Of a stretch of DNA of 64,000 nucleotides, positions 7,322-60,094 are shown in pieces. How positions within the stretch are numbered: the stretch's first letter is position 1; every line of letters begins with the position of its first letter. This DNA is from Macrostomum hystrix (taxonomy: Eukaryota > Animalia > Platyhelminthes), in assembly GCA_950097015.1 (NCBI GenBank), contig CATNEN010000003.1, positions 10,726,001 to 10,790,000 of the forward strand, in the 5' to 3' direction. Both the position numbers and the translations under genes were made by a program. The notes beneath the pieces were generated by a model. The model made no database searches and had not been told where the DNA came from. It was given only the letters and a program-made list of their open reading frames with translations.

Positions 7322-10300
7322 ATGTTCCCCTTTCTGAATTTGCTCTCACGAGTCGTGCTTTTCCTGATGAACTCACTTCATCCTGAAGAGAAGCAGCAAG
7401 CGTCACTCACTGACGAGGAGCTGCTGGCTGCCATCAGGGACGACGACGTGGCCTCAGTAGATCGGCTCATTGCCAGTGGCAAGAGCATCGACGCCTTCGT
7501 TGCGTTTAGAGGCACATTTTATACCCCAGCGATGCTTGCGTGCGAATTCGGAAGACACGACATCCTGATGAGACTCATCCACGGCAGGGCGGATGTAGAC
7601 AAGCAGAACTGGAGAGGAACCACGGCATTGTGGATTGCATCACAAAATGGTTATCAGCAGCTTGTGGATTCGCTCATCAGAGCACAAGCCGACATCAACA
7701 TTCAACAACACCAGGGCACATCACCTCTCTGGATTGCCTCACAAGAAGGCCATCATGAGGTGGCTCGCTCACTCATTCAAGCAGCAGCCGATGTCAATCT
7801 TCAAGAGAAAGTTGATGGCTTATCACCTCTCTACATTGCCTCACATTTCGGCCGTCATGAGGTTGCTCGCTCACTCATTCAAGCAGGAGCTGACGTCAAT
7901 CTTCAAGAGAAAGTTAATTGCTTATCACCTCTCTACATTGCCTCACAAAAGGGCCATCATGAGGTTGCTCGCTCACTCATTCAAGCAGGAGCTGACGTCA
8001 ATCTTCAAGAGAAAGTTAATGGCTTATCACCTCTCTACATTGCCTCACAAAATGGCCATCATGAGGTGGCTCGCTCACTCATTCAAGCTGGAGCCGACGT
8101 CAATCTTCAAGAGAAAGTTAATGGCTTATCACCTCTCTACATTGCCTCACAAAATGGCCATCATGAGATGGCTCGCTCACTCATTCAAGCAGGAGCCGAC
8201 GTCAATCTTCAAGAGAAAGTTGATGGCTTATCACCTCTCTACATTGCCTCACATTTCGGCCGTCATGAGGTTGCTCGCTCACTCATTCAAGCTGGAGCCG
8301 ACGTCAATCTTCAAGAGAAAGTTAATGGCTTATCACCTCTCTACATTGCCTCACAAAATGGCCATCATGAGGTGGCTCGCTCACTCATTCAAGCTGGAGC
8401 CGACGTCAATCTTCAAGAGAAAGTTCATGGCTTATCACCTCTCTACATTGCCTCACAAAATGGCCATCATGAGGTGGCTCGCTCACTCATTCAAGCAGGA
8501 GCTGACGTCAATCTTCAAGAGAAAGTTAATGGCTTATCACCTCTCTACATTGCCTCACAAAATGGCCATCATGAGGTGGCTCGCTCACTCATTCAAGCAG
8601 GAGCTGACGTCAATCTTCAAGAGAAAGTTAATGGCTTATCACCTCTCTACATTGCCTCACAAAATGGCCATCATGAGGTGGCTCGCTCACTCATTCAAGC
8701 TGGAGCCGACGTCAATCTTCAAGAGAAAGTTCATGGCTTATCACCTCTCTACATTGCCTCACAAAATGGCCATCATGAGGTGGCTCGCTCACTCATTCAA
8801 GCAGGAGCTGACGTCAATCTTAAAGAGAAAGTTGATGGCTCATCACCTCTCTACATTGCCTCAGAAAATGGCCATCATGAGGTTGCTTGCTCACTCATTC
8901 AAGCAGGAGCTGACGTCAATCTTCAAGAGAAAGTTAATGGCCGCTCATCTCTCTACATTGCCTCACAAAATGGTTATCATGAGGTGGCTCGCTCACTCAT
9001 TCAAGCTGGAGCCGACGTCAATCTTCAAGAGAAAGTTCATGGCTTATCACCTCTCTACATTGCCTCACAAAATGGCCATCATGAGATGGCTCGCTCACTC
9101 ATTCAAGCAGGAGCCGACGTCAATCTTCCAGAGAAAGTTCGTGGCGCGTCACCTCTCTACATTGCCTCACAAAAAGGCCGTCATGAGGTGGCTCGCTCAC
9201 TCATTCAAGCAGGAGCTGACGTCAATCTTCAAGAGAAAAAATATGGCGCGTCACCTCTCTACATTGCCTCACAAAATGGCCATCATGAGGTGGCTCGCTC
9301 ACTCATTCAAGCAGGAGCTGACGTCAATCTTCAAGAGAAAGTTAATGGCTTTTCACCTCTCTACATTGCCTCACAAAATGGCCATCATGAGGTGGCTCGC
9401 TCACTCATTCAAGCAGGAGCTGACGTCAATCTTAAAGAGAAAGTTGATGGCTCATCACCTCTCTACATTGCCTCACAAAATGGCCATCATGAGGTTGCTC
9501 GCTCACTCATTCAAGCAGGAGCTGACGTCAATCTTCAAGAGAAAGTTAATGGCCGCTCATCTCTCTACATTGCCTCACAAAATGGCCATCATGAGGTGGC
9601 TCGCTCACTCATTCAAGCAGGAGCCGACGTCAATCTTCCAGAGAAAGTTCGTGGCGCGTCACCTCTCTACATTGCCTCACAAAAAGGCCGTCATGAGGTG
9701 GCTCGCTCACTCATTCAAGCAGGAGCTGACGTCAATCTTCAAGAGAAAAAATATGGCGCGTCACCTCTCTACATTGCCTCACAAAATGGCCATTATGAGG
9801 TGGCTCGCTCACTCATTCATGCAGGAGCTGACGTCAATCTTCCAGAGAAAGTTCATGGCTTATCACCTCTCTACATTGCCTCACTTTGCGGTCATCATGA
9901 GGTGGCTCGCTCACTCATTCAAGCAGGAGCTGACGTCAATCTTCAAGAGAAAGTTGATGGCTTATCACCTCTCTACATTGCCTCACAAAATGGCCATCAT
10001 GAGGTGGCTCGCTCACTCATTCAAGCAGGAGCCGACGTCAATCTTAAAGAGAAAAAATATGGCTCATCACCTCTCTACATTGCCTCACAAAATGGCCATC
10101 ATGAGGTGGCTCGCTTACTCATTCATGCAGGAGCTGACGTCAATCTTCCAGAGAAAGTTCATGGCGAGTCACCTCTCTACATTGCCTCACAAAATGGCCA
10201 TCATGAGGTTGCTCGCTCACTCATTCAAGCAGGAGCTGACGTCAATCTTCAAGAGAAAGTTAATGGCCGCTCATCTCTCTACATTGCCTCACAAAATGGT

Positions 10301-13300
10301 TATCATGAGGTGGCTCGCTCACTCATTCAAGCAGGAGCCGACGTCAATCTTAAAGAGAAAAAATATGGCTCATCACCTCTCTACATTGCCTCAGAAAATG
10401 GCCATCATGAGGTTGCTTGCTCACTCATTCAAGCAGGAGCTGACGTCAATCTTCAAGAGAAAGTTAATGGCCGCTCATCTCTCTACATTGCCTCACAAAA
10501 TGGTTATCATGAGGTGGCTCGCTCACTCATTCAAGCTGGAGCCGACGTCAATCTTCAAGAGAAAGTTCATGGCTTATCACCTCTCTACATTGCCTCACAA
10601 AATGGCCATCATGAGATGGCTCGCTCACTCATTCAAGCAGGAGCCGACGTCAATCTTCCAGAGAAAGTTCGTGGCGCGTCACCTCTCTACATTGCCTCAC
10701 AAAAAGGCCGTCATGAGGTGGCTCGCTCACTCATTCAAGCAGGAGCTGACGTCAATCTTCAAGAGAAAAAATATGGCGCGTCACCTCTCTACATTGCCTC
10801 ACAAAATGGCCATCATGAGGTGGCTCGCTCACTCATTCAAGCAGGAGCTGACGTCAATCTTCAAGAGAAAGTTAATGGCTTTTCACCTCTCTACATTGCC
10901 TCACAAAATGGCCATCATGAGGTGGCTCGCTCACTCATTCAAGCAGGAGCTGACGTCAATCTTAAAGAGAAAGTTGATGGCTCATCACCTCTCTACATTG
11001 CCTCACAAAATGGCCATCATGAGGTTGCTCGCTCACTCATTCAAGCAGGAGCTGACGTCAATCTTCAAGAGAAAGTTAATGGCCGCTCATCTCTCTACAT
11101 TGCCTCACAAAATGGCCATCATGAGGTGGCTCGCTCACTCATTCAAGCAGGAGCCGACGTCAATCTTCCAGAGAAAGTTCGTGGCGCGTCACCTCTCTAC
11201 ATTGCCTCACAAAAAGGCCGTCATGAGGTGGCTCGCTCACTCATTCAAGCAGGAGCTGACGTCAATCTTCAAGAGAAAAAATATGGCGCGTCACCTCTCT
11301 ACATTGCCTCACAAAATGGCCATTATGAGGTGGCTCGCTCACTCATTCATGCAGGAGCTGACGTCAATCTTCCAGAGAAAGTTCATGGCTTATCACCTCT
11401 CTACATTGCCTCACTTTGCGGTCATCATGAGGTGGCTCGCTCACTCATTCAAGCAGGAGCTGACGTCAATCTTCAAGAGAAAGTTGATGGCTTATCACCT
11501 CTCTACATTGCCTCACAAAATGGCCATCATGAGGTGGCTCGCTCACTCATTCAAGCAGGAGCCGACGTCAATCTTAAAGAGAAAAAATATGGCTCATCAC
11601 CTCTCTACATTGCCTCACAAAATGGCCATCATGAGGTGGCTCGCTTACTCATTCATGCAGGAGCTGACGTCAATCTTCCAGAGAAAGTTCATGGCGAGTC
11701 ACCTCTCTACATTGCCTCACAAAATGGCCATCATGAGGTTGCTCGCTCACTCATTCAAGCAGGAGCTGACGTCAATCTTCAAGAGAAAGTTAATGGCCGC
11801 TCATCTCTCTACATTGCCTCACAAAATGGCCATCTTGAGGTGGCTCGCTCACTCATTCAAGCAGGAGCCGACGTCAATCTTCCAGAGAAAGTTCGTGGCG
11901 CGTCACCTCTCTACATTGCCTCACAAAAAGGCCGTCATGAGGTGGCTCGCTCACTCATTCAAGCAGGAGCTGACGTCAATCTTCAAGAGAAAAAATATGG
12001 CGCGTCACCTCTCTACATTGCCTCACAAAATGGCCATTATGAGGTGGCTCGCTCACTCATTCAAGCAGGAGCTGACGTCAATCTTCCAGAGAAAGTTCAT
12101 GGCTTATCACCTCTCTACATTGCCTCACTTTGCGGTCATCATGAGGTGGCTCGCTCACTCATTCAAGCAGGAGCTGACGTCAATCTTCAAGAGAAAGTTG
12201 ATGGCTTATCACCTCTCTACATTGCCTCACAAAATGGCCATCATGAGGTGGCTCGCTCACTCATTCAAGCAGGAGCCGACGTCAATCTTAAAGAGAAAAA
12301 ATATGGCTCATCACCTCTCTACATTGCCTCACAAAATGGCCATCATGAGGTGGCTCGCTTACTCATTCATGCAGGAGCTGACGTCAATCTTCCAGAGAAA
12401 GTTCATGGCGAGTCACCTCTCTACATTGCCTCACAAGAAGGCCATCATGAGGTGGCTCGCTCACTCATTCAAGCAGGAGCCGACGTCAATCTTCCAGAGA
12501 AAAAATATGGCGCGTCACCTCTCTACATTGCCTCAAAAAATGGCCATCATGAGGTGGCTCACTCACTCATTCAAGCAGGAGCTGACGTCAATCTTCAAGA
12601 GAAAGTTCGTGGCTCATCACCTCTCTACATTGCCTCACAAAATGGCCATCATGAGGTTGCTCGCTCACTCATTCAAGCAGGAGCTGACGTCAATCTTCCA
12701 GAGAAAGTCCATGGCGCGTCACCTCTCTACATTGCCTCACAAAATGGCCATCATGAGGTGGCTCGCTCACTCATTCAAGCAGGAGCCGACGTCAATCTTC
12801 AAGAGAAAGTTGATGGCTTATCACCTCTCCATATTGCCTCACAAAATGGCCATCATGAGGTGGCTCGCTCACTCATTCAAGCAGGAGCTGACGTCAATTT
12901 TCAAGAAAAATCATTGAAGCAGCGATCCAGCAGAAGGTATGTATTTGATTAAAATTAAAAGTTTGTAATTATAATAATTCATTTCTATTGCCTTATCGGG
13001 ACAGATGTGCAGCTGACGGGACTCATTGCGTAACGCATTTGCATCTGCAATACGAGCTCAATACAAGCAAAGATTCCAGTTTCTTACTTGCACAACCTGC
13101 TCATCTGTTATTATTTTTCTCAGACGTTTTGTTTTTGAGTTTGTGTCATTATTCCTGGATATGCTCACTGCTTCTAGAGAAAACACTAACCACAAAACTT
13201 CACTGTCTAAACAGGCAAAATCTTTTAAATGTTTCTGAGCATGGAAAATTTGAGCAAGGGAATTTAATAGAAGTTTGAAAACCGCTTTCACTACTCCTCT

Positions 13301-15285
13301 CACCCTTCAGAGCCTCCCAGCCTCACTGAAATTCAGCACTGCCGCCTCCTCTCACCCTTCAGAGCCTCCCAGCTTCACTGAAACTCAGCACTGCCGCCTC
13401 CTCTCACCCTTTAGAGCCGCACCCAGCGACGCAGAGTTGAGCCAGCTGCTGCACTCCAAGCTCTCTCAGTCGGGATTCGTGGACTCCAGAGCCGCCTTGC
13501 AGATCGCTGTGGCTGACGTCTTGCAGGATGTTCTCAGGAAGAGATTGAACTCTGAGAAATGGTTCGCTGTGGGCAGCTTCTCTGAGGCCTGGGGCAACAG
13601 CCTGGTCTCTCTGGATGGCGGAACTGACATCGACTCTGACATCGATGTTATTCAGCTGATTCCAGGAAGGCCGATTCACCCGAGAGATGTGTGCGAGTGC
13701 GACCGAGTGGAGGCTGCTCAGACAGTGGAGCTCAGCAATGGCCACATCCTGATCTCCGGATTCGGTGAGAATTTCCTGCCAGAGACTATCGGGATGGCTG
13801 GGACAAGAATCGAGCATGTGTTTGGCTTGCTCATCTTCTTTGGCTTTCTAAAGCAAACAACAAACAAGGAAAACAAGCAAATTTTTCTGTTTTCTGAGAG
13901 TTTCTGAGAGTTAAAAGCTGGAAGCATTTGCAATATTTCTCGCATTTCCCATTCCTCCAGCCTCCAACCCAGCCCAGACAAAAAAGGGCTCAGCCCTGAG
14001 ACCGGCTGTGGACGAAGTCACCGCCCGCCGCCTCTGCCGCTACCCTCCCATCGCGCCGCTGCAGCCACCAAGACTCTCCAACTCCAACATCCCCCAGTCC
14101 GTGCTGCAGTCGCTCCAGCGAGACCTCACCTCTGCCTCATCCCCCTGTCACGTGGTGCACGCAGCTCCTCCCGGAATGGGGGGCCAGCAGCTCCGAGTGA
14201 GCAGCAGCTTCCTGGAGAGGCGACTGCTGCGGATTCTCAGCACTCTGCAAGGCCAGCTGTTCGTCACACTCAAGTGGCTGCTGAAGAAAAAGATCTCAAA
14301 CGTCGGCTTGAAGTCCTATCACGCAAAGACCGTCACGTTCCGAATGCTGGAGGAGACACCGGCTGAGCAGTGGAAGCCGGAGAATCTCGTGAGTCTCACG
14401 AGACGCTCGCTGCAGATGCTGCTTGACGGTGTGGAGAGCGGCTGCAGATCAGACACACCTGACGGTCGGATCCTGGAGCACTTCTTCCTGAGCGATGCCG
14501 CTGTGTACCTGAAAGGCTTGAAGTCGCCCACATCAGCTGAGAGAGTGAGCGAAGCGTTGAATCGGGCAGCCGGTGCATTGAGAGACGCCATGGCTGAGCT
14601 GCCTCAGCTGCTGCTGCAGTTCGAGGACAGTCTGCGACCCGTCACCAAATCGGGCCGATTCCACTTCCACCCGTTCCTCATCCTGCCGATTCTTCACGTC
14701 AGACCCGTGTCAGAAGCCAAGACATGCGAGTTCCACGAGATCTACGACATCGTGAGAGAGTCGGTGCTTCGTCTGTCCGATGGAGACCGCAGCCCGCAGT
14801 CCCGAGAGAGTCTCGCAGAGCTGATCAACAAACTGCCAGAATGCGCCCGATCAGCGCGAGAGTCTCTCAAAGCGCTGGCCTGCCTGAAGTTCGGCGACCG
14901 ACTCAGTGCAGCGAGAGTTGTGAGCGACTGCGGGCCGTTCAGTGCGAGCAGAGGCATCGATTGGGGAGCTGAGAGGTCGGCGAGTGAGGCCACTGCGGAC
15001 TTTGTGTGGCAGCACCTGACGAGCCGAGACTCCGCCTGTAAATTCTGCTTCGAGTTTTACAAGCGACCGAAGCTGCCGATTGAGCACAAAGTCTTTGCCC
15101 GCTGCTTTCCGCTGCAGATGAAGAACTACAGCAACTGGTTCTATCTGAACTTTGACGCTCTGCTGCGGGCTCTTCGCAATGAGCTGACAGGAGCAGGAGA
15201 CGGGAGCGATCAGGACTGGATCCGGGATGTGGCTCAGAGGGAGGATGCGGATGAGCAGGAGCTGCTGGTGGCTGCGGCGATCTGA
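7322..15285 (+). CDS. Ankyrin-repeat / cGAS-like (Mab-21, cGLR) nucleotidyltransferase fusion, copy 1; exons 7322-12936, 13415-13764 (alternative in-frame acceptor 13373), 13961-15285; about 2430 aa
   Basis: About 53 ANK repeats; donor AAG|gtatg (phase 2) joins ...tttag|A GCC GCA CCC. Exon 2 has VGSFSEAW...DSDIDV (NTase GS + DxD). Exon 3 has PAVDEV (third acid) and the Mab-21 C-lobe motifs [40 protein letters not shown]. The true start may be a downstream Met (MNSLHPEE). Confidence 0.85.
7700..12910 (+). repeat. Coding tandem array of 102-bp (34-aa) ankyrin units
   Basis: Near-identical units with higher-order periods of 1530 bp (15 units) and 714 bp (7 units). Confidence 0.97.
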
Positions 15286-15639
15286 GGAGATCTGGAGCTG
15301 CTGCGGCGGCTGCGCAATTGAACAAATAACCATTCAACAGCTGGTTGTTCCACTCCATGAAATAAAGAGCCGCTTTCAAGAACTGCGGAAGGTCTGCGAT
15401 GCAACCCAGATTTTTGGGGGAATTTGCAGTAACGACTTTAACGCAACGCGTATTTGGGGCTTCGGGAAGGACTTCGTCCTGCACTCGCCTACAGCAAGAG
15501 AAACAAAGGGTGGTTGCAGGTGCTGCACGTAGTGCCGTTGCACGCGGGGCTGCTTTACAGGATGTGTCACCTCTGGTTTTTTTTAATGTCATTTTTCCTT
15601 AAAAAATGCTTAAATTTGACCACTCCCATTCGGGTGGAT

Positions 15640-16000
15640 CACTAGATTTACTATGTACACTCACTTCTCTCTCAAATAAAGTTTCTTTCACTCCCGGTAG
15701 GTATAATGGAGAATTGCACCTACCCGTCTACTCTTTCGCAGGGCCTGGGACGAATTTAACTTTAAGATTAAATCCTATAGACTGGACTGCATATCACGAC
15801 GACATGGCATATAAAAAAGCAGAGGAAACTTCTACTTCAGCAGAAGAAGCTTTGTCTAAAAACATATAGCTAGATGAACAGATGTTACAAGAACTAGAAG
15901 CCATCCCCTCAGAAGATTTAACTGTAAAGGAACGGTTAACACGACAGCTTGCATGTAAAAAGAATTATTCAAGCAAAAGTTAGATTTGGCCTAGGGTTAA
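15640..16000 (+). pseudogene. Polinton/adintovirus-type PLA2X (parvovirus VP1u-like phospholipase A2) remnant
   Basis: ELHLPVYSFAGPGTNL...NPIDWTAYHDDMAY...(stop/frameshift)...DEQMLQELEAI...ERLTRQL / IIQAKVRFGLG resembles the YxGPGxxL...D..A..HD.AY PLA2 motif. Confidence 0.7.
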
Positions 16001-16059
16001 CCCGTCATAAAACACACAAGCCTAATAAATGCCTATTCTGCACAACACTTTATGGCCAG

Positions 16060-16650
16060 GGTCTTACTCTGGAAGAGGCAATAAAAAAGCACATGCCATA
16101 TCGTATCGTAAGCCAAAAGTATTTAGAAAATGTGTGCACCATTTTAAAGACGAGATATGGCATGCGGATTTAGTTGTTATGCCGACAGAACGAAATTTTA
16201 AATATATTCTAACAGTTCTGGACGGCTTCACTCGTTTTGCTTGCGTGATTCCTTTAAAGTCAAAGAAATAAGAATAAGTAGCTAAAGCATTAGAAGCTAA
16301 TATATAAAAATCAGGCCGGAGTTCAGAACGCCTATAGATGTGTAGAGGAAGGCAAAGAATTTTATAACCACTACATGTATAAACTAAACTACATGCAGTA
16401 AATGCTAGTAACGAGGAACCACTTGCGTGCCTGCGACCTCCCACATCTAAAATTCAAGTAAGTAACAAAGTTCACATATATAAATACAAAGATAAGTTTT
16501 AAAAGGGTAGAAAGGGGTATTGGAAAATATCACAAGTGTTTATAGTGAAGAAAGTTTAAAAAAACAACGCTTATATATAACTTATATTTTAGAAAATAAG
16601 GATAAAGAAGAAATTATTGGAAGTTTTTATAAAGAACAGCTTTTAAAGGC
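16060..16650 (+). mobile_element. Polinton/Maverick-type rve integrase remnant (frameshifted, internally deleted)
   Basis: DEIWHADLVVMP...FKYILTVLDGFTRFACVIPLKSK; GKEFYN (about 16350-16367); SKIQVSNKVHIYKYKDKF*KG; YILENKDKEEIIGSFYKEQLLK. These are collinear with Polinton integrase motifs. Confidence 0.8.
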
Positions 16651-17007
16651 CTTATGCAGTTCCTGCAGTACCTGCCTGCGAAGCAGCATTACATGCCTTC
16701 TCAACTCTATTCATTTGTTTATTTAATACTTTAATACTACACATGCTTTTAACGGACGTACGCTGGATTTTTTATAGTAAGTTTTCTTGTAACAACACAT
16801 GTGTTAAGCAGACTTTCATCTTGTTGTAATAAAATGAATGTCCTAGCTAGAGCGTGAGGAATTTAAAGCTAGCGACTATTCACCGGATTCGGTGTCCGAC
16901 GCAATCGGTTCAATAGCAGCAGGGGAAATCTGAAAATAAATAGCGTTAAGAGACTGGGGTGGGCGAGCGAAGCGAAGAGACCCGCGTGTCGTCCTCCGGC
17001 CCGGCGA

Positions 17008-17204
17008 CAGTGGCGCAACCAGGGACGGGGGTGGCGGCCGCCCTCCCCAAGTCCAACGGCCATACCGGCCCTTGAAATTGGCCCAGGAATGGTGGGCGAA
17101 AACCGCGAAACAGAGCGCGCTCCACCTGGCGGCCGCCCCCCCTTCGACCCGCGGGGCAATGTACGCAAAGGGCAATGTACGCAAAAACCGCCCCTAAGGC
17201 ACTG
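17008..17204. mobile_element. Possible hAT-type MITE (197 bp)
   Basis: Ends CAGTG...CACTG flanked by 8-bp near-duplicates CCCGGCGA (17000-17007) and CCTGGCGA (17205-17212); the terminal inverted match is short. Confidence 0.4.
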
Positions 17205-17599
17205 CCTGGCGAAACTCCCAATGAAAAAAAAGAATAACAGTATGAACACGAAGACTCGAATAATTTGATTGGGAGTGATTTAATATTATGTTTTGACTCG
17301 CCGACTCCAGATAAGAATAGGAATTGATTTGACTCTAGTTTACCTGCTCAACTTGATTTAAAAGTTACACCGACAGAATAAGGATATTCGCACGGAAAGC
17401 AATTATAGTGCGCTCATAGTGAAAAGCAAAATTTGGTCCGGGGAACTCGGATATAAAAATGTTACTTAACTGGCCTAATCCGCGCCCTACTCTTCCCCGA
17501 GAGGCTCCGGTTGTCTCTGCTTTCAGCGCTGCCCCGACAGATCCTATCGGTTGGCACTCCTTCTGCCTGACGACGGAGTCTCCGAAGAGAGCACGTACT

Positions 17600-19510
17600 G
17601 ACTTCGACAACAAGCGCCTATCTATACCACCCTTGTCAGCGGCGCACTCTCAAGACGCGTAGCGCCGAAAGCTACGCCGATAGATCGACGCCTGGCTGTC
17701 CGAGTGGAGGAAGATTTCTGCTCCGTGGACATTTTGATTGTATCCGGGGCGCAGGAACAGGGCGGTAGAGTTTATGCCGGTGTGCTGGGAGAAGGTCGCC
17801 ACAGTTTTCCCTCCGGACATAATGCAGTAGCCGAAACCAGAGACCGAGTTGATTTGCGAACCGTCGGTGAAGCAGTGAATTTCACGGGGTTGGCCGTGGT
17901 CACGTACTTACTGGCGAGGCGGAATGCTGGTTTTGAATTTTAGCGGTGGGCACAGCTTCGACGGAATTCCGTCTGAGAGAATTTTGAGGCCTCCTCCTGC
18001 GTCCAGGTCCCGTAGGCTGAGGTCGCTGTGGGGCTGGAGGTTCCGCTTGCTGAAGGCAAGTTGCTTCCGGATGGAGACGCCCGCGTCCAGAAGACGGCGA
18101 GCCGTCTTCATCGCTTCCCCTTTGATAAAAAGATCTAAAGGGGGAAGGTCCAGGAAGGCATTCATGCCAGCGAAGGGAGTGGAGGGTGCCGCACTCATGA
18201 TGGCTCGACAAGCACGGCCCTGCACCTTGTTTAGGGCCTCCAGGACCCGTTGGTCTCCAGGGCACTATTCCAGATGAAGCCGGCAAAAGAAATGGCCTGT
18301 GTAACAATGGTAGTGTAAATCCATCAGAGACGGCGGGGGGTGAGGCCCCAGGTAGCACAGAAGGCTCTGCGGATCTGCGCGAGCGTAGCGAGAGCTTTGC
18401 GAGTTTTAAATTTGACGTGAGGTGTCCAGCTCAGCCTGTGATCGAGGATGACACCTAAGCATCTAGTTTGCTTCTCCATGGCGATGGGTTTGTCATAGAG
18501 AAGAAGAGGCTCAATCCTCCAGTTTCGTTTGCTGGTGAACATAATGGCGACGGTCTTGGACTCAGAGAGTTTGAGGCCGCAGCTATGAGCCCAGCGCTCG
18601 GCACGGTGGATGAAAGCTTGCAAAAGGTCTCTAAGGACCGGGGGAGAAGGTCCGGCCACAGTGGCGGTGATGTCGTCAGCATAGCCGATTTTTTGGACCG
18701 GGTCCGGGTTAGGGCTGCAGAGCAGCTCGTCCATGACAAGGTTCCAAAGGATCGGACTGAGAACGCCACCCTGCGGGCCTCCCTTCTGGACTTTCACAGA
18801 ACGGGAGTGGCCAAGCAGGTGCTCGTGCGCAGCCCGGCGCTCCAGGGCTCGCCTAAAGGCTCCGAAGAGCGCATTGTCGAAGGCAACATCAATGTCGAGG
18901 AAAAGCGAGAGAGCGAAACCGTGCCAAGCACGGCGCGCTCCAGCTTGTCGACAATGGCATGCAGAGCACTTTCGATGGAGCGTCCGGATCGAAAGGCGTG
19001 CTGGTTGGCGGAGAGCGGGGAGTTCCTCAGCTCAACGTGAAGGAGGCGCCAAAGAACCAGCCTTTCAAGCAGCTTAGGAAAGAAAGATGTTAAGCTGATG
19101 GGGCGGAAGACTTTGGCGGAATGGTAGTCTCCCTTCCCAGTCTTGGGGATTAAGACGATGGTGGCTTCCTGCCAAGACATGGGTACGTACCCGAGGGTGA
19201 TACAGGCCTTGAACAGGTTGCAGAGGAGGCCGAGGAACCTGTCATTTTTCACCGCTTCATGTAGGAAGTCGGGGTAAATGTTGTCAGGTCCAGGCGACTT
19301 AAAATGTGAAAAGGAATTAGCAGCGCGAGCTGTCCGTTCTCTAGTAATAATGGTGGTCGCAAGGATGTGTCCACCAAGAGTGTGGTCCGGCGGGTCCTGA
19401 AGCGGCGCGGTCCACGGGAAAGCGCGGGCGAGCATGATGTTCAGCGATTCGCCAGGATTCTCAGCAAGCCGGCCGTCAGGTCTTTTGATCACTGAGAGCT
19501 TCGTCATTTT
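17600..19510 (-). mobile_element. Decayed, 5'-truncated non-LTR retrotransposon (LOA/R1-like): RT + RNase H
   Basis: KSPGPDNIYP, IPKTGK..FRPISLTSF, QHAFRSGRS, GGPQGGVLSPILWNL, GYADD, LGVILDHRLSW; RNase H motifs CFTDGS (about 17870) and HSDSQA (about 17700); several frameshifts and stops. Confidence 0.9.
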
Positions 19511-19521
19511 GTCAAGAGTGA

Positions 19522-19865
19522 CTCACCTGACAGAATTCTCACCTGATAGACAGAATTCTCACCTGACAGATAGAATTCTCACCTGACAGACAGAATTCTC
19601 ACCTGACAGACAGAATTCTCACCTGACAGATAGAATTCTCACCTGATAGACAGAATTCTCACCTGACAGATAGAATTCTCACCTGATAGACAGAATTCTC
19701 ACCTGATAGACAGAATTCTCACCTGATAGACAGAATTCTCACCTGATAGACAGAATTCTCACCTGATAGACAGAATTCTCACCTGATAGACAGAATTCTC
19801 ACCTGATAGACAGAATTCTCACCTGATAGACAGAATTCTCACCTGTTAGACAGAATTCTCACCTG
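19522..19865. repeat. 20-bp minisatellite (CTCACCTGATAGACAGAATT)n
   Basis: About 17 tandem copies abutting the LINE 5' truncation. Confidence 0.95.
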
Positions 19866-20180
19866 GTATTGAATATTCTCATTTGTTAAAAACGCATTCC
19901 CACCATCACATTTTTTTCTTTTCGCATATCGATCAGAATCCTATTCTCAGAATTCTCACTTGTTAACGGAATTCTCGCCTTTTAGACAGAAATAAGACAG
20001 AAATGAAATATCGCCAGCAATAGCAGCTTCTCGCCAACAACCAATGAGCAACTCGGAGCAGAGAAGCAACTCTGAAAGGCTTCTTATTGGCTGAGCAGAA
20101 TTATAAATACTGCTATTTGGTGGGAGCCTAAACTAATTTGGCTGCAATCGAAAATCGAATCGCTTACCGCACCTTGCAAA

Positions 20181-23100
20181 ATGTTCCCCTTTCTGAATTT
20201 GCTCTCACGAGTCGTGCTTTTCCTGATGAACTCACTGCTTCCTGAAGAGAAGCAACAAGCGTCACTCACTGACGAGGAGCTGCTGGCTGCCATCAGGGAC
20301 GACGACGTGGCCTCAGTAGATCGGCTCATTGCCAGTGGCAAGAGCATCGACGCCTTCGTTGCGTTTAGAGGCACATTTTATACCCCAACGATGCTTGCGT
20401 GCGAATTCGGAAGACACGACATCCTGATAAGACTCATCCATGGCAGGGCGGATGTAGACAAGCAGAACTGGAGAGGAACCACGGCATTGTGGATTGCATC
20501 ACAAAATGGTTATCAGCAGCTTGTGGATTCGCTCATCAGAGCACAAGCCGACATCAACATTCAACAACACCAGGGCGCCTCACCTCTCTGGATTGCCTCA
20601 CAAGAAGGCCATCATCAGGTGGCTCGCTCACTCATTCAAGCAGCAGCCGATGTCAATCTTCAAGAGAAAGTTGATGGCTTATCACCTCTCTACATTGCCT
20701 CACAAAATGGCCATCATGAGGTGGCTCGCTCACTCATTCAAGCAGCAGCCGATGTCAATCTTCAAGAGAAAGTTGATGGCTTATCACCTCTCTACATTGC
20801 CTCACATTTCGGCCGTCATGAGGTTGCTCGCTCACTCATTCAAGCAGGAGCTGACGTCAATCTTCAAGAGAAAGTTAATTGCTTATCACCTCTCTACATT
20901 GCCTCACAAAATGGCCATCATGAGGTGGCTCGCTCACTCATTCAAGCTGGAGCCGACGTCAATCTTCAAGAAAAAGTTCATGGCTTATCACCTCTCTACA
21001 TTGCCTCACAAAATGGCCATCATGAGGTGGCTCGCTCACTCATTCAAGCAGGAGCCGACGTCAATCGTCAAAGAAATTCTGGCGAGTCACCTCTCTACAT
21101 TGCCTCACAAAATGGCCATCATGAGGTGGCTCGCTCACTCATTCAAGCAGGAGCCGACGTCAATCTTCAAGAGAAAGTTGATGGCTTATCACCTCTCCAT
21201 ATTGCCTCACAAAATGGCCATCATGAGGTGGCTCGCTCACTCATTCAAGCAGGAGCCGACGTCAATCTTCAAGAGAAAGTTAATGGCTCATCACCTCTCT
21301 GGATTGCCTCACACGAAGGCCATCATGATGTGGCTCGCTCACTCATTCAAGCAGGAGCCGACGTCAATCGTCAAGAGAAAGTTAATGGCTCATCACCTCT
21401 CTGGATTGCCTCACACGAAGGCCATCATGAGGTGGCTCGCTCACTCATTCAAGCAGGAGCCGACGTCAATCGTCAAATAAATTCTGGCGAGTCACCTCTC
21501 TACATTGCCTCACAAAATGGCCATCATGAGGTGGCTCGCTCACTCATTCAAGCAGGAGCTGACGTCAATCTTCCAGAGAAAGTTCGTGGCGCGTCACCTC
21601 TCTACATTGCCTCACAAAATGGCCATCATGAGGTGGCTCGCTCACTCATTCAAGCAGGAGCTGACGTCAATCTTCAAGAGAAAGTTGATGGCTTATCACC
21701 TCTCTATATTGCCTCACACAATGGCCATCATGAGGTTGCTCGCTCACTCATTCAAGCAGGAGCCGACGTCAATCGTCAAATAAATTCTGGCGAGTCACCT
21801 CTCTACATTGCCTCACAAAATGGCCATCATGAGGTGGCTCGCTCACTCATTCAAGCAGGAGCTGACGTCAATCTTCCAGAGAAAGTTAATGGCCGCTCAC
21901 CTCTCTACATTGCCTCACGAAATGGCCATCATGAGGTGGCTCGCTCACTCATTCAAGCAGGAGCCGACGTCAATCGTCAAAGAAATTCTGGCGAGTCACC
22001 TCTCAATATTGCCTCACACAATGGCCATCATGAGGTTGCTCGCTCACTCATTCAAGCAGGAGCTGACGTCAATCTTCCAGAGAAAGTTCATGGCGCGTCA
22101 CCTCTCTACATTGCCTCACAAAATGGCCATCATGAGGTGGCTCGCTCACTCATTCAAGCAGGAGCTGACGTCAATCTTCCAGAGAAAGTTAATGGCCGCT
22201 CACCTCTCTACATTGCCTCACACAATGGCCATCATGAGGTGGCTCGCTCACTCATTCAAGCAGGAGCTGACGTCAATCTTCGAAAGAAAGTTGATGGCTC
22301 ATCACCTCTCCACATTGCCTCACAAAATGGCCATCATGAGGTGGCTCGCTCACTCATTCAAGCAGGAGCTGACGTCAACCTTCCAGAGAAAGTTCATGGC
22401 TCATCACCTCTCTGGATTGCCTCACACGAAGGCCATCATGAGGTGGCTCGCTCACTCATTCAAGCAGGAGCCGACGTCAATCGTCAAATAAATTCTGGCG
22501 AGTCACCTCTCTACATTGCCTCACAAAATGGCCATCATGAGGTGGCTCGCTCACTCATTCAAGCAGGAGCCGACGTCAATCTTCAAGAGAAAGTTAATGG
22601 CTCATCACCTCTCTGGATTGCCTCACACGAAGGCCATCATGAGGTTGCTCGCTCACTCATTCAAGCAGGAGCCGACGTCAATCGTCAAATAAATTCTGGC
22701 GAGTCACCTCTCTACATTGCCTCACAAAATGGCCATCATGAGGTGGCTCGCTCACTCATTCAAGCAGGAGCTGACGTCAATCTTCCAGAGAAAGTTAATG
22801 GCTTATCACCTCTCCATATTGCCTCACAAAATGGCCATCATGAGGTGGCTCGCTCACTCATTCAAGCAGGAGCTGACGTCAATCTTCCAGAGAAAGTTAA
22901 TGGCCGCTCACCTCTCTACATTGCCTCACGAAATGACCATCATGAGGTGGCTCGCTCACTCATTCAAGCAGGAGCCGACGTCAATCTTCCAGAGAAAGTT
23001 AATGGCTCATCACCTCTCTACATTGCCTCACAAAATGGCCATCATGAGGTGGCTCGCTCACTCATTCAAGCAGGAGCCGACGTCAATCGTCAAATAAATT

Positions 23101-26100
23101 CTGGCGAGTCACCTCTCTACATTGCCTCACAAAATGGCCATCATGATGTGGCTCGCTCACTCATTCAAGCAGGAGCTGACGTCAATCTTCCAGAGAAAGT
23201 TCATGGCGCGTCACCTCTCTACATTGCCTCACAAAATGGCCATCATGAGGTGGCTCGCTCACTCATTCAAGCAGGAGCTGACGTCAATCTTCCAGAGAAA
23301 GTTAATGGCTTATCACCTCTCCATATTGCCTCACAAAATGGCCATCATGAGGTGGCTCGCTCACTCATTCAAGCAGGAGCTGACGTCAATCTTCCAGAGA
23401 AAGTTAATGGCCGCTCACCTCTCTACATTGCCTCACGAAATGACCATCATGAGGTGGCTCGCTCACTCATTCAAGCAGGAGCTGACGTCAACCTTCCAGA
23501 GAAAGTTCATGGCTCATCACCTCTCTACATTGCCTCACAAAATGGCCATCATGAGGTGGCTCGCTCACTCATTCAAGCAGGAGCTGACGTCAATCTTCCA
23601 GAGAAAGTTCGTGGCGAGTCACCTCTCTACATTGCCTCACAAAATGGCCATCATGAGGTGGCTCGCTCACTCATTCAAGCAGGAGCTGACGTCAACCTTC
23701 CAGAGAAAGTTCATGGCTCATCACCTCTCTGGATTGCCTCACACGAAGGCCATCATGAGGTGGCTCGCTCACTCATTCAAGCAGGAGCCGACGTCAATCT
23801 TCAAGAGAAAGTTAAGGGCTTCTCACCTCTCCACATTGTCTCACTATTCGGCGATCATGAGGTGGCTCGCTCACTCATTCAAGCAGGAGCCGACGTCAAT
23901 CGTCAAAGAAATTCTGGCGAGTCACCTCTCTACATTGCCTCACAAAATGGCCATCATGATGTGGCTCGCTCACTCATTCAAGCAGGAGCTGACGTCAATC
24001 TTCCAGAGAAAGTTCATGGCGCGTCACCTCTCTACATTGCCTCACAAAATGGCCATCATGAGGTGGCTCGCTCACTCATTCAAGCAGGAGCTGACGTCAA
24101 TCTTCCAGAGAAAGTTCATGGCGCGTCACCTCTCTACATTGCCTCACAAAATGGCCATCATGAGGTGGCTCGCTCACTCATTCAAGCAGGAGCCGACGTC
24201 AATCTTCAAACAAATTCTGGCGATTCACCTCTCTACATTGCCTCACTTTGCGGTCATCATGAGGTGGCTCGCTCACTCATTCAAGCAGGAGCTGACGTCA
24301 ATCTTCCAGAGAAAGTTCGTGGCGCGTCACCTCTCTACATTGCCTCACAAAATGGCCATCATGAGGTGGCTCGCTCACTCATTCAAGCAGGAGCTGACGT
24401 CAATCTTCAAGAAAAATCATTGAAGCAGCGATCCAGCAGAAGGTATGTATTTGATTAAAATTAAAAGTTTGTAATTATAATAATTCATTTCTATTGCTTA
24501 ATCGGGACAGATGTGCAGCTGACGTGACTCATTGCGTAACGCATCTGCATCTGCAATACGAGCTCAATACAAGCAAAGATTCCATTTTCTTACTTGCACA
24601 ACCTGCTCATCTCTTATCATTTTTCTCAGACGTTTTGTTTTTTGAGATTGTGTCATTATTCCTGGATATTTTCAAGTATGCTCACTGCTTCTAGGGAAAA
24701 CACTAACCACAAAACTTCACTGTCTAAACAGGCAAAATTTTTTAAAATGTTTCTGAGCATGGAAAATTTGAGCAAGGGAATTTCATAGAAGTTTGAAAAC
24801 CGCTTTCACTACTCCTCTCACCCTTCAGAGCCTCCCAGCCTCACTGAAACTCAGCACTGCCGCCTCCTCTCACCCTTCAGAGCCTCCCAGCCTCACTGAA
24901 ACTCAGCACTGCCGCCTCCTCTCACCCTTTAGAGCCGCACCCAGCGACGCAGAGCTGAGCCAGCTGCTGCACTCCAAGCTCTCTCAGTCGGGATTCGTGG
25001 ACTCCAGAGCCGCCTTGCAGATCGCTGTGGCTGACGTCTTGCAGGATGTTCTCAGGGAGATAATGAACTATGAGGGCTGGCATATTCAAGGCAGCTTCTC
25101 TGAGGCCTGGGGCAACAGCCTGGTCTCTCTGGATGGCGGAACTGACATCGACTCTGACATCGATGTTATTCAGCTGATTCCAGGAAGGCAGTTTCACCCG
25201 AGAGATGTGTGCGAGTGCGACCGAGTGGAGGCTGCTCAGACAGTGGAGCTCAGCAATGGCCACATCCTGATCTCCGGATTCGGTGAGAATTTCCTTCCAG
25301 AGACTGTCGGGATTGCTGGGACAAGAATTGAGCATATGTTTGGCTTGCTCAACTTCTTTGGCTTTCTAAAGGAAACAACAAACAAGGAAAAGAAACACAT
25401 TTTTCTGTTTTCTGAGAGTTAAAAGCTGGAGGCATTTGCAATATTTCTCGCATTTCCCATTCCTCCAGCCTCCAACCCAGCCGATTCATGGAATGGCTCC
25501 GCCCTGAGACCGGCTGTGGACGAAGTCACCGCCCGTCGCCTCTGCAGCTACCCTCCCATCGCGCCGCTGCAGCCACCAAGACTCTCCAACTCCAACATCC
25601 CCCAGTCCGTGCTGCAGTCGCTCCAGCGAGACCTCACCTCTGCCTCATCGCCCTGTCACGTGGTGCACGCAGCTCCTCCCGGAATGGGGGGCCAGCAGCT
25701 CCGAGTGAGCAGCAGCTTCCTGGAGAGGCGACTGCTGCGGAGTCTCAGCACTCTGCAAGGCCAGCTGTTCGTCACACTCAAGTGGCTGCTGAAGAAGAAG
25801 ATCTCAAACGTCGGCTTCAAGTCCTATCACGCAAAGACCGTCACGTTCCGAATGCTGGAGGAGACACCGGCTGAGCAGTGGAAGCCGGAGAATCTCGTGA
25901 GTCTCACGAGACGCTCGCTGCAGATGCTGCTTGACGGTGTGGAGAGCGGCTGCAGATCAGACACACCTGACGGTCGGATCCTGGAGCACTTCTTCCTGAG
26001 CGATGCTGCTGTGTACCTGAAAGGCTTGAAGTCGCCCACATCAGCTGAGAGAGTGAGCGAAGCGTTGAATCGGGCAGCCGGTGCATTGAGAGACGCCATG

Positions 26101-26889
26101 GCTGAGCTGCCTCAGCTGCTGCTGCAGTTCGAGGACAGTCTGCGACCCGTCAACGACTTGGGCCGATTCCACTTCCACCCGTTCCTCATCCTGCCGAGGC
26201 TCGATGACCGACACGTGTCAGAAGCCAAGACATGCGAGTTCCACGAGATCTACGACATTGTGCGAGAGTCGGTGCTTTGTCTATCCGATGGAGACCGCAG
26301 CCCGCAGTCGCGAGAGAGTCTCGCAGAGCTGATCGACAAACTGCCAGACTGCGCCAGATCAGCGCGAGAGTCTCTCAGAGCGCTGGCCTGCCTGAAGTTC
26401 GGCGACCGACTCAGTGCAGCGAGAGTTGTGAGCGACTGCGGGCCGTTCAGTGCGAGCAGAGGCATCGATTGGGGAGCTGAGAGGTCGGCGAGTGAGGCCA
26501 CTGCGGTCTTTGTGTGGCAGCACCTGAGGAGCCGAGACTCCGCCTGGAAATTCTGCTTTGTGTTTGACGAGCGACCGAAGCTGCCGATTGAGCACGAAGT
26601 CTTTGCCGGCTGCTTTCCGCTGCAGATGGAGAACTACGAAGACTGGTTCTACCTGAACTTTGACGCTCTGCTGCGGGCTCTTCGCAATCAGCTGACAAGA
26701 ACAGTAGACGCGAGCGATGAGGACTGGATCCAGGATGTGGCTCAGAGGGAGGATGCGGATGAGCAGGAGCTGCTGGTGGCTGCGGCGATCTGCGGAGATC
26801 TGCGGAGATCTGGAGCTGCTGCGGCGGCGGCGCAGAAGAATCACTCACGAGCTGTGCCGGCTGCCGGGCTGGCTGCAGCAAAAGATTGA
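20181..26889 (+). CDS. Ankyrin-repeat / cGAS-like (Mab-21, cGLR) nucleotidyltransferase fusion, copy 2; exons 20181-24442, 24933-25282, 25469-26889; about 2010 aa
   Basis: Paralogue of copy 1 with the same intron positions and phases; about 40 ANK repeats (mixed 33 and 34 aa); IQGSFSEAW...[26 protein letters not shown]. Confidence 0.85.
20560..24415 (+). repeat. Coding tandem array of 99/102-bp ankyrin units
   Basis: 34-aa units (..EKVxG..) interspersed with 33-aa units ([16 protein letters not shown]). Confidence 0.97.
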
Positions 26890-29075: not shown

Positions 29076-29356
29076 GGACTTTCGGAAGATATATAGTGTA
29101 TTTGCAAGGAGGTATGGTTTACTGATTAATTAGTAATAAATTACTGATTACTGATTTACTGCTTTAATAAAACTTCAATTCTCGAGTTACATGTTTGGAT
29201 GGGTGTTGTATTTTTACATGACCAATAATCCTTTTTACGTTCTTTTCGGTTGCAAGAACGTACGAGTAATAACTGGATGTCTATGTCAAAAAGAAACAAG
29301 TTTGTCAAGTGGCAAAGAATTCTTCAAAGACTTCTTATACAAACGTGCTTTTTAAA

Positions 29357-59645: not shown

Positions 59646-60094
59646 GTGATAATTGATGATCTCTTATGAATTGTAGGTCTTCGTTCACTCGGAAAAAAAA
59701 TTTGCCGTCCACTCAGCTGATTTTTTTATATCATATTTTTTCTCCTTTAAACACTCCTTTGATCAGATATTAACTGCTGAAAAAAATTACTTTGCATCTT
59801 TAACTTTTTTCTGTTTCATAAAACCGTATTTTACAAAGAAATTTTAAGAGATATTTTGCTTGCTTATGTTTTTGCGTTAGCCAAGCCAATTTCCTAGATT
59901 TCTTTTACCGGATTTGTCTATTTTTTACTTCCTTTTTGAAGCATGACTGACACATCTTTCTTAAGTAAATAGTACACAGCTGCTTTCACTGTTAAATGTG
60001 TTCCATTATACTACTGATTTTAATTACCCCTTTTCTTAATCCCTAATAGATTCCCAAAAATTTCACCCTTTATCTTCAGATCCCTACTTATTTT

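Follow-up and report, generated by a model that had tools for sequence, protein, structure and literature searches.

Tandem ankyrin arrays varying at DARPin-type binding positions and predicted to be joined to cGAS-like enzyme exons in the flatworm Macrostomum hystrix

Two long ankyrin arrays are encoded in a 64,000-nucleotide stretch of the Macrostomum hystrix genome (the window; contig CATNEN010000003.1), and in both of them the beta-turn and the end of helix 1 gain amino-acid changes faster than silent ones, the framework of the units being under purifying selection. These two regions make up the concave, ligand-binding face in known ankyrin proteins. Taking all parts of the explanation together, we regard it as likely that the arrays are parts of two tandem germline-encoded genes, which belong to a large family of ankyrin-plus-cGAS-like receptor genes in flatworms. 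More than 100 loci of this kind were found in the genome.

Structure of the two genes

Both genes comprise three exons, with the ankyrin array in exon 1 and a nucleotidyltransferase of the cGAS/Mab-21 fold in exons 2 and 3. The features of the locus are as follows.

7322..12936, forward strand: gene 1 exon 1 (open reading frame 7322-12952 and its translation; donor AG/GTATGT at 12936/12937)
7697..12895, forward strand: ankyrin array 1 (TRF period 102, 50.9 copies, 91% matches; unit list)
12937..13414, forward strand: gene 1 intron 1 (3' end within a 52-bp tandem repeat, 13294-13418)
13415..13764, forward strand: gene 1 exon 2, first half of the nucleotidyltransferase core (sequence and family alignment)
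13961..15285, forward strand: gene 1 exon 3, remaining cGAS/Mab-21-like domain and C-terminal extension (stop codon 15283-15285)
16029..19507, unstranded: transposon debris between the genes (an integrase-core fragment and reverse-transcriptase fragments)
16029-16271, forward strand: integrase-core fragment (Pfam rve, E = 4e-5)
18324-19507, reverse strand: reverse-transcriptase fragments (Pfam RVT_1, E = 1.7e-14 and 1.3e-5)
20181..24442, forward strand: gene 2 exon 1 (open reading frame 20181-24458 and its translation; donor AAG/GTATGT at 24442/24443)
20556..24401, forward strand: ankyrin array 2 (TRF; unit list; signatures)
24933..25282, forward strand: gene 2 exon 2, first half of the nucleotidyltransferase core (acceptor ttag/A, donor G/GTGAG)
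25469..26889, forward strand: gene 2 exon 3, remaining cGAS-like domain (acceptor ccag/C at 25468/25469)

The span of 7700-24415 assigned to the ankyrin region in an earlier sequence-only reading also takes in exons 2 and 3 of gene 1 and the transposon debris between the arrays.

Exon 1 of gene 1 encodes a conserved hydrophobic N-terminus, diverged N-terminal ankyrin repeats, an array of 51 units and the linker SLKQRSSR, and was matched by Pfam Ank/Ank_2 (E = 3e-20). The same N-terminus and linker enclose the 38-unit array of gene 2. No C-terminal capping repeat was found in exon 1 of either window gene, whereas the paralogs retain it. The junction of exons 1 and 2 was seen in the transcripts of paralogs, not directly for either window gene. 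In gene 1, the RNA-contig depth was zero across 12976-13269 of intron 1, and the contigs start at 13413, their upstream loose ends matching the exon-1 end of paralogs (PLPEKQN); the acceptor ttag/A at 13415 preserves the reading frame. Further downstream, the GT..AG joint at 13764 was present in RNA contigs, and the 26 letters at the exon 2-3 joint in RNA contigs (runs X7 and X9) were those of 25469-25494 in gene 2.

Variation falls on the positions randomised in DARPins

The window holds 89 full ankyrin units; 78 have a length of 34 aa and the other 11 a length of 33 aa. Array 1 consists of 50 units of 34 aa (102 nt) preceded by one of 33 aa. Array 2 combines 28 units of the longer form with 10 of the shorter, the latter mostly of the NRQ[RI]NSGES type. 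Translation of both open reading frames bore out the unit consensus proposed from the sequence alone. The units matched ankyrin-1, NOMPC and DARPins in the PDB with E values down to 7e-103, and an AF2 model of eight units gave each of them a beta-bridge (positions 6 and 9), a helix 1 (11-18) and a helix 2 (21-29). In array 1, the mean pairwise identity was 0.85 for amino acids and 0.91 for DNA; the corresponding values for array 2 were 0.81 and 0.89. Only 60 DNA types and 38 signatures at the variable positions were distinguished among the 89 units; array 2 carries 22 signatures, six of which also occur in array 1.

Amino-acid entropy was highest at unit positions 7 (2.63), 9 (2.50), 3 (1.35), 18 (1.29), 17 (1.28) and 6 (1.11), followed by position 13 (0.83); the other framework positions reached about 0.8 at most and mostly 0.3 or less. 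DARPin modules bear six randomised positions and one partially randomised position (PMC6796971), which were located here with the off7 and DARPin-16 sequences (PMC6130421). Unit positions 3, 6, 7, 9, 17 and 18 correspond to DARPin x33, x2, x3, x5, x13 and x14. Thus, the fully randomised DARPin positions are precisely the six with the highest entropies, as the sequence-only reading had claimed. Such a coincidence has a probability of 7e-7 under a uniform null and of 1.75e-5 under a null whose weights come from the diverged arrays of this gene family. In the model, positions 17 and 18 lie at the end of helix 1, and 6 and 9 on the beta-bridge.

The arrays share with DARPin libraries an invariant consensus framework and diversity at module positions 2, 3, 5, 13, 14 and 33 of the concave surface. 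They differ from the libraries in being natural, in a 34-aa unit with one extra loop residue besides the 33-aa alternative, and in comprising only 38 signatures in dozens of modules (vs. two or three) without a C-cap. Furthermore, the partly randomised position 26 is invariant in the arrays, module position 9 (His of TPLH), which is no randomised DARPin position, is variable, and x2 is barely selected (see below).

Selection at the variable codons

We fixed the six DARPin positions beforehand as the selection class and let the synonymous rate be shared across the unit. The maximum-likelihood codon model yielded an omega of 3.55 at the variable class and 0.35 in the framework (LRT against omega = 1, 29.9), and with all units included an omega of 3.49 (LRT, 36.3); over both fits, omega in the framework was 0.35-0.53 and the p values ran from 4e-8 to 2e-9, all to be read with the caution that the trees came from the same short recombining units and that the models permit one base change per step, both of which can inflate omega. 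Site by site, omega was 9.4 at x5, 4.3 at x3, 3.9 at the non-DARPin position 9, 3.2 at x14 and x13, and 2.9 at x33, and near neutral (1.1) at x2. In a tree-free minimum event count, the non-synonymous rate at the six codons exceeded the synonymous rate of the framework 5.3-fold (p = 3e-6), or 2.4- to 2.5-fold with all units. In pairwise comparisons, dN at the variable codons was 0.42 against a framework dS of 0.065.

The strength of the omega result follows from taking the framework synonymous rate as the neutral yardstick. When measured against synonymous change within the same six codons, the ratio was 1.1-1.7 and not significant. The diversifying selection on ligand-contact residues that had been proposed from the sequence alone is borne out, though more weakly than had been proposed: it holds relative to the framework (omega of 3.5), but not significantly on the own-codon yardstick, nor at x2.

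The variable positions might simply be the least constrained ankyrin surface, drifting neutrally, with unit duplication keeping the remainder uniform. The own-codon ratio is consistent with this account, as is the correlation between the entropy profiles of young and old arrays (Spearman, 0.66), and the DARPin positions were themselves picked partly for low natural conservation. Neutral drift is bounded by the synonymous rate, however, and the excess at the variable codons (2.4-5.3 times; LRT p < 1e-7) argues against relaxed constraint. So do the convex-face positions 17, 18, 21, 22, 25 and 32, which match the concave ones in variability in diverged arrays but underwent only one-quarter to two-fifths as many changes in the homogenised arrays and hardly vary in any of the nine young arrays. 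We consider relaxed constraint as the sole cause improbable.

The framework toggles between synonymous codons much as described before (GCT/GCC 52:37, GTG/GTT 72:14, GCA/GCT 82:7), and also at GGC/GGT (80:7) and AAT/AAC (84:5). The variable codons do differ at two or three bases, for instance TTA/GCG/TCA/GAG/CGC at unit position 9 and GTT/AAA at unit position 6. Such codons without intermediates would fit a dedicated mechanism that writes the variable codons, either targeted mutation or somatic cassette shuffling of the lamprey VLR kind with the arrays as cassette stores, as would the extensive reassortment described below and the great length of the arrays without a C-cap. The wobble bases of the codons touching the most variable ones are nonetheless fixed (Gly GGC in 87 of 89 units; Ser10 TCA and Ser16 TCA in 89 of 89 each), which disfavours a local mutation hot spot, because a mutator acting on the region would also strike bases that lie one to three nucleotides away. 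As unit types are common to paralogs in the germline assembly and no flanking orphan cassettes were seen, a dedicated mechanism appears highly improbable.

Homogenisation and reshuffling across the family

The same pattern was found in seven more homogenised paralog arrays (event-count ratio, 1.9-3.3), and omega reached 3.3-4.8 at the same variable class in L013, L014 and the arrays with the KEVVDSLIKARADV framework. In contrast, the pattern was absent from four old diverged arrays (0.66-0.97). The variability pattern thus separates nine homogenised arrays from four diverged ones.

Units expand, contract and reshuffle through whole-unit duplication and through recombination, both inside an array and from one array to another. 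In array 1, a block of 15 units was recently duplicated, 13 units matching exactly at lag 15; all four allele combinations were present in 22 of the 28 variable-site pairs; and paralog arrays count 51, 38, 28, 38 and 32 units. The concerted evolution suggested by the sequence-only reading applies in a loose sense only, as the framework dS was about the same within arrays (0.061-0.066) as between the two (0.067). The units of both arrays make up one common young pool and were not homogenised array by array. The unique sequences flanking the arrays differ between the genes by a dS of 0.036-0.047.

The enzyme exons

In both genes, exon 2 encodes the G-S motif VGSFSE and the D-x-D motif DSDIDV, and exon 3 the third catalytic Asp in PAVDEV. 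D135 is nearly invariant in the family alignment, and the third Asp, D192, is present in 43 of the 49 members. Exon 3 in the window scored 20 bits against Pfam Mab-21_C, under the cut-off of 24.1, and that of gene 1 is 70% identical to Macrostomum lignano proteins. The homolog P0005, 58% identical to exon 3, was modelled in place of the joined protein of the window (pLDDT 88.7); the best PDB matches listed were all cGAS or Cv-cGLR1, with a probability of 1.00 and target-normalised TM scores of 0.50-0.59. Together with the expression and splicing seen in RNA contigs, where the exon 1-2 junction is that of paralogs, motifs and homolog model indicate that the array is spliced to a nucleotidyltransferase of the cGAS/Mab-21 fold retaining the G-S, D-x-D and third-Asp motifs.

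The enzyme exon is near-constant among paralogs with anciently different ankyrin exons: dS among paralogs was 0.03-0.07 in exon 3 vs. 0.55-0.76 in the N-terminus of exon 1. Exon 2 of gene 2 differs from that of gene 1 by a dS of 0.042, and dN/dS between the enzyme exons of the two genes was 0.8-1.35. Together with the loss of the C-cap from both, this ratio means that the two window copies could be drifting and not functional. They might be young decaying duplicates, the pattern being a fossil of selection on the ancestral unit pool, since a dS of about 0.04 is too short for stop codons to arise. Against decay, there are open frames of 1876 and 1425 codons, a framework omega of 0.35-0.5 within the arrays and RNA contigs with exon 2-3 junction sequence specific to gene 2. 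We hold decay to be unlikely, albeit less so than the other alternatives weighed here; it bears on present function only and leaves the reading of the variability pattern unaffected.

Comparison with known systems

The closest likeness in working was found in the repeats with high internal conservation of fungal NLRs (ANK, TPR and WD; Podospora HNWD/HET-E type; Dyrka et al., 2014; PMC4986451). Both have near-identical tandem repeats that differ in unit number and are reshuffled, are joined to a signalling domain of the innate-immunity type, and show diversifying selection at binding-surface codons (here with an omega of 3.5 and a non-significant own-codon ratio). The published line for high internal conservation is a repeat identity of at least about 85% over at least 100 aa; array 1 lies at it (0.85 at the amino-acid level) and array 2 slightly below (0.81). 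Only 0.8% of metazoan repeat proteins carry such repeats (PMC4986451). Unlike the fungal case, the host is an animal, the arrays have 38-51 units (vs. 7 to more than 16) and the partner is a cGAS-like nucleotidyltransferase instead of a NOD/STAND ATPase. We reject membership in the fungal NLR type, as there is no NOD (NACHT/NB-ARC) and the downstream exons have the cGAS/Mab-21 fold.

Among animals, ANK joined to a cGAS-like receptor (cGLR) is a recorded minority architecture, with Stylophora pistillata, a coral, as one example (Li et al., 2023; 10.1101/2023.02.22.529553), and the flatworm genes share it. In the same survey, hypervariable or internally homogenised ankyrin arrays are not described, and most platyhelminths are without cGLRs apart from proteins that are Mab21-like, unlike the more than 100 loci in this flatworm genome.

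The arrays also recall TALE, PUF and PPR proteins in having units of about 34 aa near-identical save for a few specificity residues. In a code of that type, one repeat reads one polymer unit via one to three residues. The flatworm fold is instead ankyrin, with six to eight positions varying per unit and no known polymer ligand. The 'modular recognition code' read from the sequence finds no support, as nothing suggests a one-repeat-one-monomer relation.

Proposed function

We propose that the ankyrin array would be the ligand-sensing part and the enzyme the constant signalling part, which may make a nucleotide second messenger upon ligand binding. The ligands would probably be proteins or other non-nucleic-acid ligands of parasites or viruses, and an arms race with these could impose the diversifying selection on the sensing surface. 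The evolutionary regime would be that of the highly internally conserved WD, ANK and TPR repeats in fungal NLRs.

The same evidence for selection would fit a function other than pathogen sensing, such as self/non-self recognition, mate or sperm recognition, or keeping selfish elements in check, in a hermaphrodite flatworm whose sexual conflict is intense. Comparable fungal arrays serve allorecognition (PMC4986451), and a STING partner was not found in the genome, the one profile match to the STING ligand-binding domain (PF15009) scoring 25.6 bits under a cut-off of 27 and unconfirmed by hmmscan. On the other hand, those members of the cGAS-like receptor family that have been characterised act as immune sensors, and nothing in the data ties expression to reproductive tissue, which makes a non-pathogen function unlikely.

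Beyond pathogen sensing by the two genes, we tentatively entertain, as possible though somewhat doubtful, a large and fast-evolving cGAS-like repertoire in flatworms, in which DARPin-like ankyrin surfaces, and not nucleic-acid binding, would set specificity, and a constant signalling exon would either recombine with numerous variable sensor exons or be homogenised across them. The extreme version of this repertoire, somatic reshuffling of the arrays in single worms, has no support.

Significance

Most animal cGAS-like receptors have, to our knowledge, no known ligand, and the field has focused on nucleic acids. A family in which the enzyme is fused to a long ankyrin array, and in which the classical protein-binding face bears a clear mark of diversifying selection, speaks for cGLRs with proteins or other ligands as their targets, and the array surfaces offer concrete candidate binding surfaces. 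More than 100 loci in one flatworm are at odds with the literature, in which the majority of flatworms have no cGLRs apart from Mab21-like ones. RNAi and transgenesis are feasible in Macrostomum lignano, and the hypothesis is thus testable in the laboratory. A strategy documented so far in fungal NLRs, in which repeats stay near-identical, units are shuffled and selection acts on a few codons of the surface, extends with this finding to animals. If true, the flatworm repertoire would be an animal counterpart of NLR diversification in fungi and plants, a natural binder library wired to a second-messenger output.

Gene models and repeat arrays

Ankyrin repeats were translated from two open frames, 7322-12952 and 20181-24458, in which a Pfam search found Ank with E 3e-20, and the top solved-structure relatives of the arrays were ankyrin-1, NOMPC and DARPins. 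The closest public proteins, at 70% identity, are those of Macrostomum lignano. The two genes and the features between them are as follows.

Gene models and intergenic features
7322-12936, gene 1 exon 1
13415-13764, gene 1 exon 2
13961-15285, gene 1 exon 3
15606-15869, weak match to a parvovirus-type PLA2-like domain (E 0.002)
16029-16271, + strand, integrase-core fragment, intergenic transposon debris
18324-19507, - strand, reverse-transcriptase fragments, intergenic transposon debris
20181-24442, gene 2 exon 1
24933-25282, gene 2 exon 2
25469-26889, gene 2 exon 3

In both genes, the last unit is truncated after NLQEK and followed directly by the array-end linker SLKQRSSR and the splice donor AG/GTATGT (12896-12936 and 24402-24442; donors at 12936/12937 and 24442/24443). 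The C-terminal capping repeat is absent from both window genes and present in five paralog loci of the same genome (L013, L015, L017, L018 and L024). The RNA evidence consists of contigs from four small public runs, a paralog mix with 0.38-0.41 of sampled words. These contigs cover the downstream ORFs with the introns skipped, have zero depth across 12976-13269 and start at 13413, their upstream ends being the exon-1 end of paralogs. At 13764 they contain a GT..AG joint, beyond which the 26 letters carried are those of the start of gene 2 exon 3 (25469-25494). The RNA contigs settle the intron positions and the junction between exons 2 and 3 of gene 2, and the joint of exons 1 and 2 in the window is predicted. 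The exon frames are consistent, and the junction R-AAPSD is the same in P0002, a protein of M. lignano.

A hydrophobic N-terminus (7322-7378), possibly a membrane anchor or signal-like segment, lies ahead of the ankyrin domain and is conserved in all close paralogs (L013, L017, L018 and L024). A 52-bp tandem repeat of 2.4 copies spans the acceptor of intron 1 in both genes (13294-13418 and 24812-24936); paralogs located on contig C18 have far more copies of it, in 52-bp steps. The source genome is 220 Mb and minisatellite-rich. Long minisatellite arrays are unusually dense in the window and take up much of its non-coding part; their periods are 16-42 bp and their copy numbers reach 95 (72 TRF rows; for example, 28029-29083, 30244-31765, 33622-35574 and 60093-64000).

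Location of the variable positions

Cutting at the conserved ADV/N boundary gave 51 full units in gene 1 and 38 in gene 2, with 34 amino acids in 78 of the 89 and 33 in the other 11. The consensus, the unit count and the list of synonymous toggles given by the sequence-only reading were all correct when the 89 units were compared. Amino-acid entropy was highest at unit positions 7, 9, 3, 18, 17 and 6, descending from 2.63 to 1.11, and the seventh-ranked position (unit position 13) had 0.83. Printed sequences of DARPins served as the source of the randomised positions. In the internal repeats of off7 and DARPin 16, differences occur at module positions 2, 3, 5, 13, 14, 26 and 33 (PMC6130421), the design comprises six randomised positions and one partly randomised (PMC6796971), and the randomised positions sit on the concave surface (PMC8229355). 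With the worm-to-DARPin alignment anchored on the invariant G, the S/TPL motif and GADVN, the six most variable worm positions are x3, x5, x33, x14, x13 and x2. Exactly these six would be drawn by chance with a probability of 7e-7 when every position has the same weight, and of 1.75e-5 when the weights follow how variable each position is in four arrays of this gene family that are old and diverged. The six top entropies are the six randomised positions, and the observation that ankyrin variation falls on DARPin positions is confirmed.

AlphaFold modelling of eight units from a single sequence (pLDDT 76) placed positions 6 and 9 on the beta-bridge flanking the Gly, with helix 1 running from 11 to 18 and helix 2 from 21 to 29. 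Thus, positions 17-18 end helix 1, as had been claimed. The description of the arrays as a natural DARPin library is apt for the location of the variation but not for its size and randomness. The 89 units comprise only 60 distinct DNA types and only 38 distinct variable-position signatures, six of which are common to both arrays.

Selection tests on the window arrays

Pairwise NG86 comparison yielded a dS of 0.065 and a dN of 0.024 (ratio 0.37) for the framework, and a dN of 0.42 for the six codons. We also counted minimum events without a tree of units, using a minimum spanning tree over the codons of each site and synonymous-maximising paths. This tree-free minimum was 29 non-synonymous events on 14.5 sites for the six codons and eight synonymous events on 21.3 sites for the framework, corresponding to a rate ratio of 5.3 (p=3e-6); the ratio was 2.4-2.5 when every unit was included and the unit frame differed a little. 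The codon-model likelihood was computed with a FastTree topology, F3x4 frequencies, a single synonymous rate common to both classes, and classes set beforehand from the DARPin design. The framework had an omega of 0.35 and the six codons one of 3.55 (LRT against omega=1, 29.9; p=4.5e-8). With all 59 unique units, the values were 0.53 and 3.49, respectively (LRT 36.3). Caveats on these estimates are that the units are short and recombine, that the trees come from the same data and that the codon models are single-step. Site-wise omega was 9.4 at x5, 4.3 at x3, 3.9 at module position 9 (the His of TPLH, a non-DARPin position), 3.2 at both x14 and x13, 2.9 at x33 and 1.1 at x2.

Measured against synonymous changes within the same six codons, the ratio was 1.1-1.7 and not significant in both NG86 and event counts. 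The NG86 synonymous count in these codons is inflated, as multi-base codon differences pass through 'synonymous' steps, and multi-base paths account for the majority of the inferred own-codon 'synonymous' steps. The own-codon ratio is the weak side of the selection evidence, not support. The proposal of diversifying selection on ligand-contact residues is supported with the framework synonymous yardstick (omega ~3.5, with replication in paralogs) but not with the own-codon yardstick.

Paralog arrays as controls

Eleven paralog arrays were taken from the same genome. Seven are homogenised (pairwise identity 0.73-0.86) and carry two distinct frameworks, the second being KEVVDSLIKARADV, and the remaining four are old and diverged (identity 0.43-0.60). 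The ratio of non-synonymous to synonymous event rates at the six positions was 1.9-3.3 in all nine homogenised arrays, including the two of the window, versus 0.66-0.97 in the four diverged arrays. The likelihood model gave omega of 3.3-4.8 for the paralog arrays, with module positions 5, 3, 13, 14 and 9 recurring.

If constraint were simply relaxed, whatever is free to vary would do so. The convex-face positions 17, 18, 21, 22, 25 and 32 vary as much as the concave ones in the diverged arrays, whereas in the homogenised arrays they hold one quarter to two fifths of the changes found at the concave positions. Positions that are free in the old arrays are thus little changed in the young ones, and the young variation is more than freedom to vary. 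The data also speak against a local mutation hot spot: a regional mutator would be expected to hit the wobble bases of codons adjoining the most variable codons, yet these are fixed (Gly GGC in 87 of 89 units, both neighbouring Ser TCA in 89 of 89). With the framework synonymous yardstick, diversifying selection is supported; it passes the controls for relaxed constraint and hot spots and recurs across paralog arrays.

The two unit lengths correspond to two loop classes, QEKVxGxS with 34 amino acids and Q[RTI]N[ST]GxS with 33, which occur together in arrays of both frameworks (array 2 of the window, W2, and L013, L015, L017, L018 and L024). Thus, the length dimorphism predates the framework split or was exchanged across it.

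Evolution of the arrays

Within array 1, a block of 15 units is duplicated, and 13 exact matches occur at lag 15. All four allele combinations were found in 22 of 28 variable-site pairs, indicative of within-unit recombination or recurrent change. Framework dS was 0.061 and 0.066 within the arrays and 0.067 between them, giving no sign that the two window arrays were homogenised separately after gene duplication; the units of both arrays form a single young pool that the genes share. In their unique flanks, genes 1 and 2 diverge by 0.036-0.047, slightly less than framework dS. The two arrays are collinear in their first few units and rearranged in the interior. We considered a TALE-like code and somatic diversification and found no support for either, nor for the 'modular recognition code' proposed earlier for the arrays.

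The enzyme exons

Exon 2 encodes the motifs VGSFSE and DSDIDV, and exon 3 encodes PAVDEV. In an alignment of 49 sequences, comprising family members and distant Mab-21-plus-TPR relatives, the G-S, D-x-D and Asp positions are conserved, with D135 nearly invariant and D192 present in 43 of 49. The window exons were searched one by one, and exon 3 alone scored 20 bits against Pfam Mab-21_C, under the cut-off of 24.1, while the natural full-length homolog P0005 passed with 24.9 bits. The fold was tested on P0005: the model predicted from the family alignment had a pLDDT of 88.7, and its best PDB matches listed were all cGAS or oyster Cv-cGLR1 (probability 1.00). At least 101 matches to exon 3 were counted in the genome, many with ankyrin exons upstream. 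A profile search of the genome found no STING ligand-binding domain above the cut-off; the sole similar match (C2:9104529-9104996, locus L025) scored 25.6 bits against a cut-off of 27, and hmmscan of the ORF did not confirm it.

Between genes 1 and 2 (13416-15285 versus 24934-26889), dN/dS was 1.35 for exon 2 and 0.81 for exon 3 at a dS of ~0.045, meaning that the cGAS-like domain is either under relaxed constraint or under positive selection. Exon 3 of gene 1 (13961-15285) differed from paralogs by a dS of 0.03-0.07 in seven of seven tested, and the non-repetitive N-terminus of exon 1 (7322-7711) by 0.55-0.76 from three paralogs with the other framework (L017, L018 and L024). This mosaic divergence suggests either that the enzyme exon was homogenised family-wide or that sensor exons were swapped. 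Without the C-cap and with fast-evolving enzyme exons, both window copies may be less than ideal representatives of the family.

Comparison with known systems and proposed function

The closest precedent for the window arrays is the repeats of fungal NLRs: 10% of their ANK repeat domains have at least 85% internal identity, together with repeat-number polymorphism, the concave ankyrin face in Podospora holds five positively selected positions, and among metazoan repeat proteins only 0.8% have repeats of this kind (Dyrka et al., 2014; PMC4986451). Unlike the fungal NLRs, the present case is in an animal, has a cGAS-like enzyme in place of the NOD domain, and extends to 38-51 units. The evolutionary regime is already known, and what is new is the animal host, the cGAS-like partner and arrays of this length. 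Li et al. (2023; 10.1101/2023.02.22.529553) list ANK-cGLR fusions as a minority architecture and report most platyhelminths to be without cGLRs beyond Mab21-like proteins. Our literature search retrieved no paper tying Macrostomum to cGAS, cGLR or Mab21, and no description of homogenised hypervariable ankyrin arrays in animals. We infer that the arrays and the enzyme together constitute an innate immune sensor of variable specificity.
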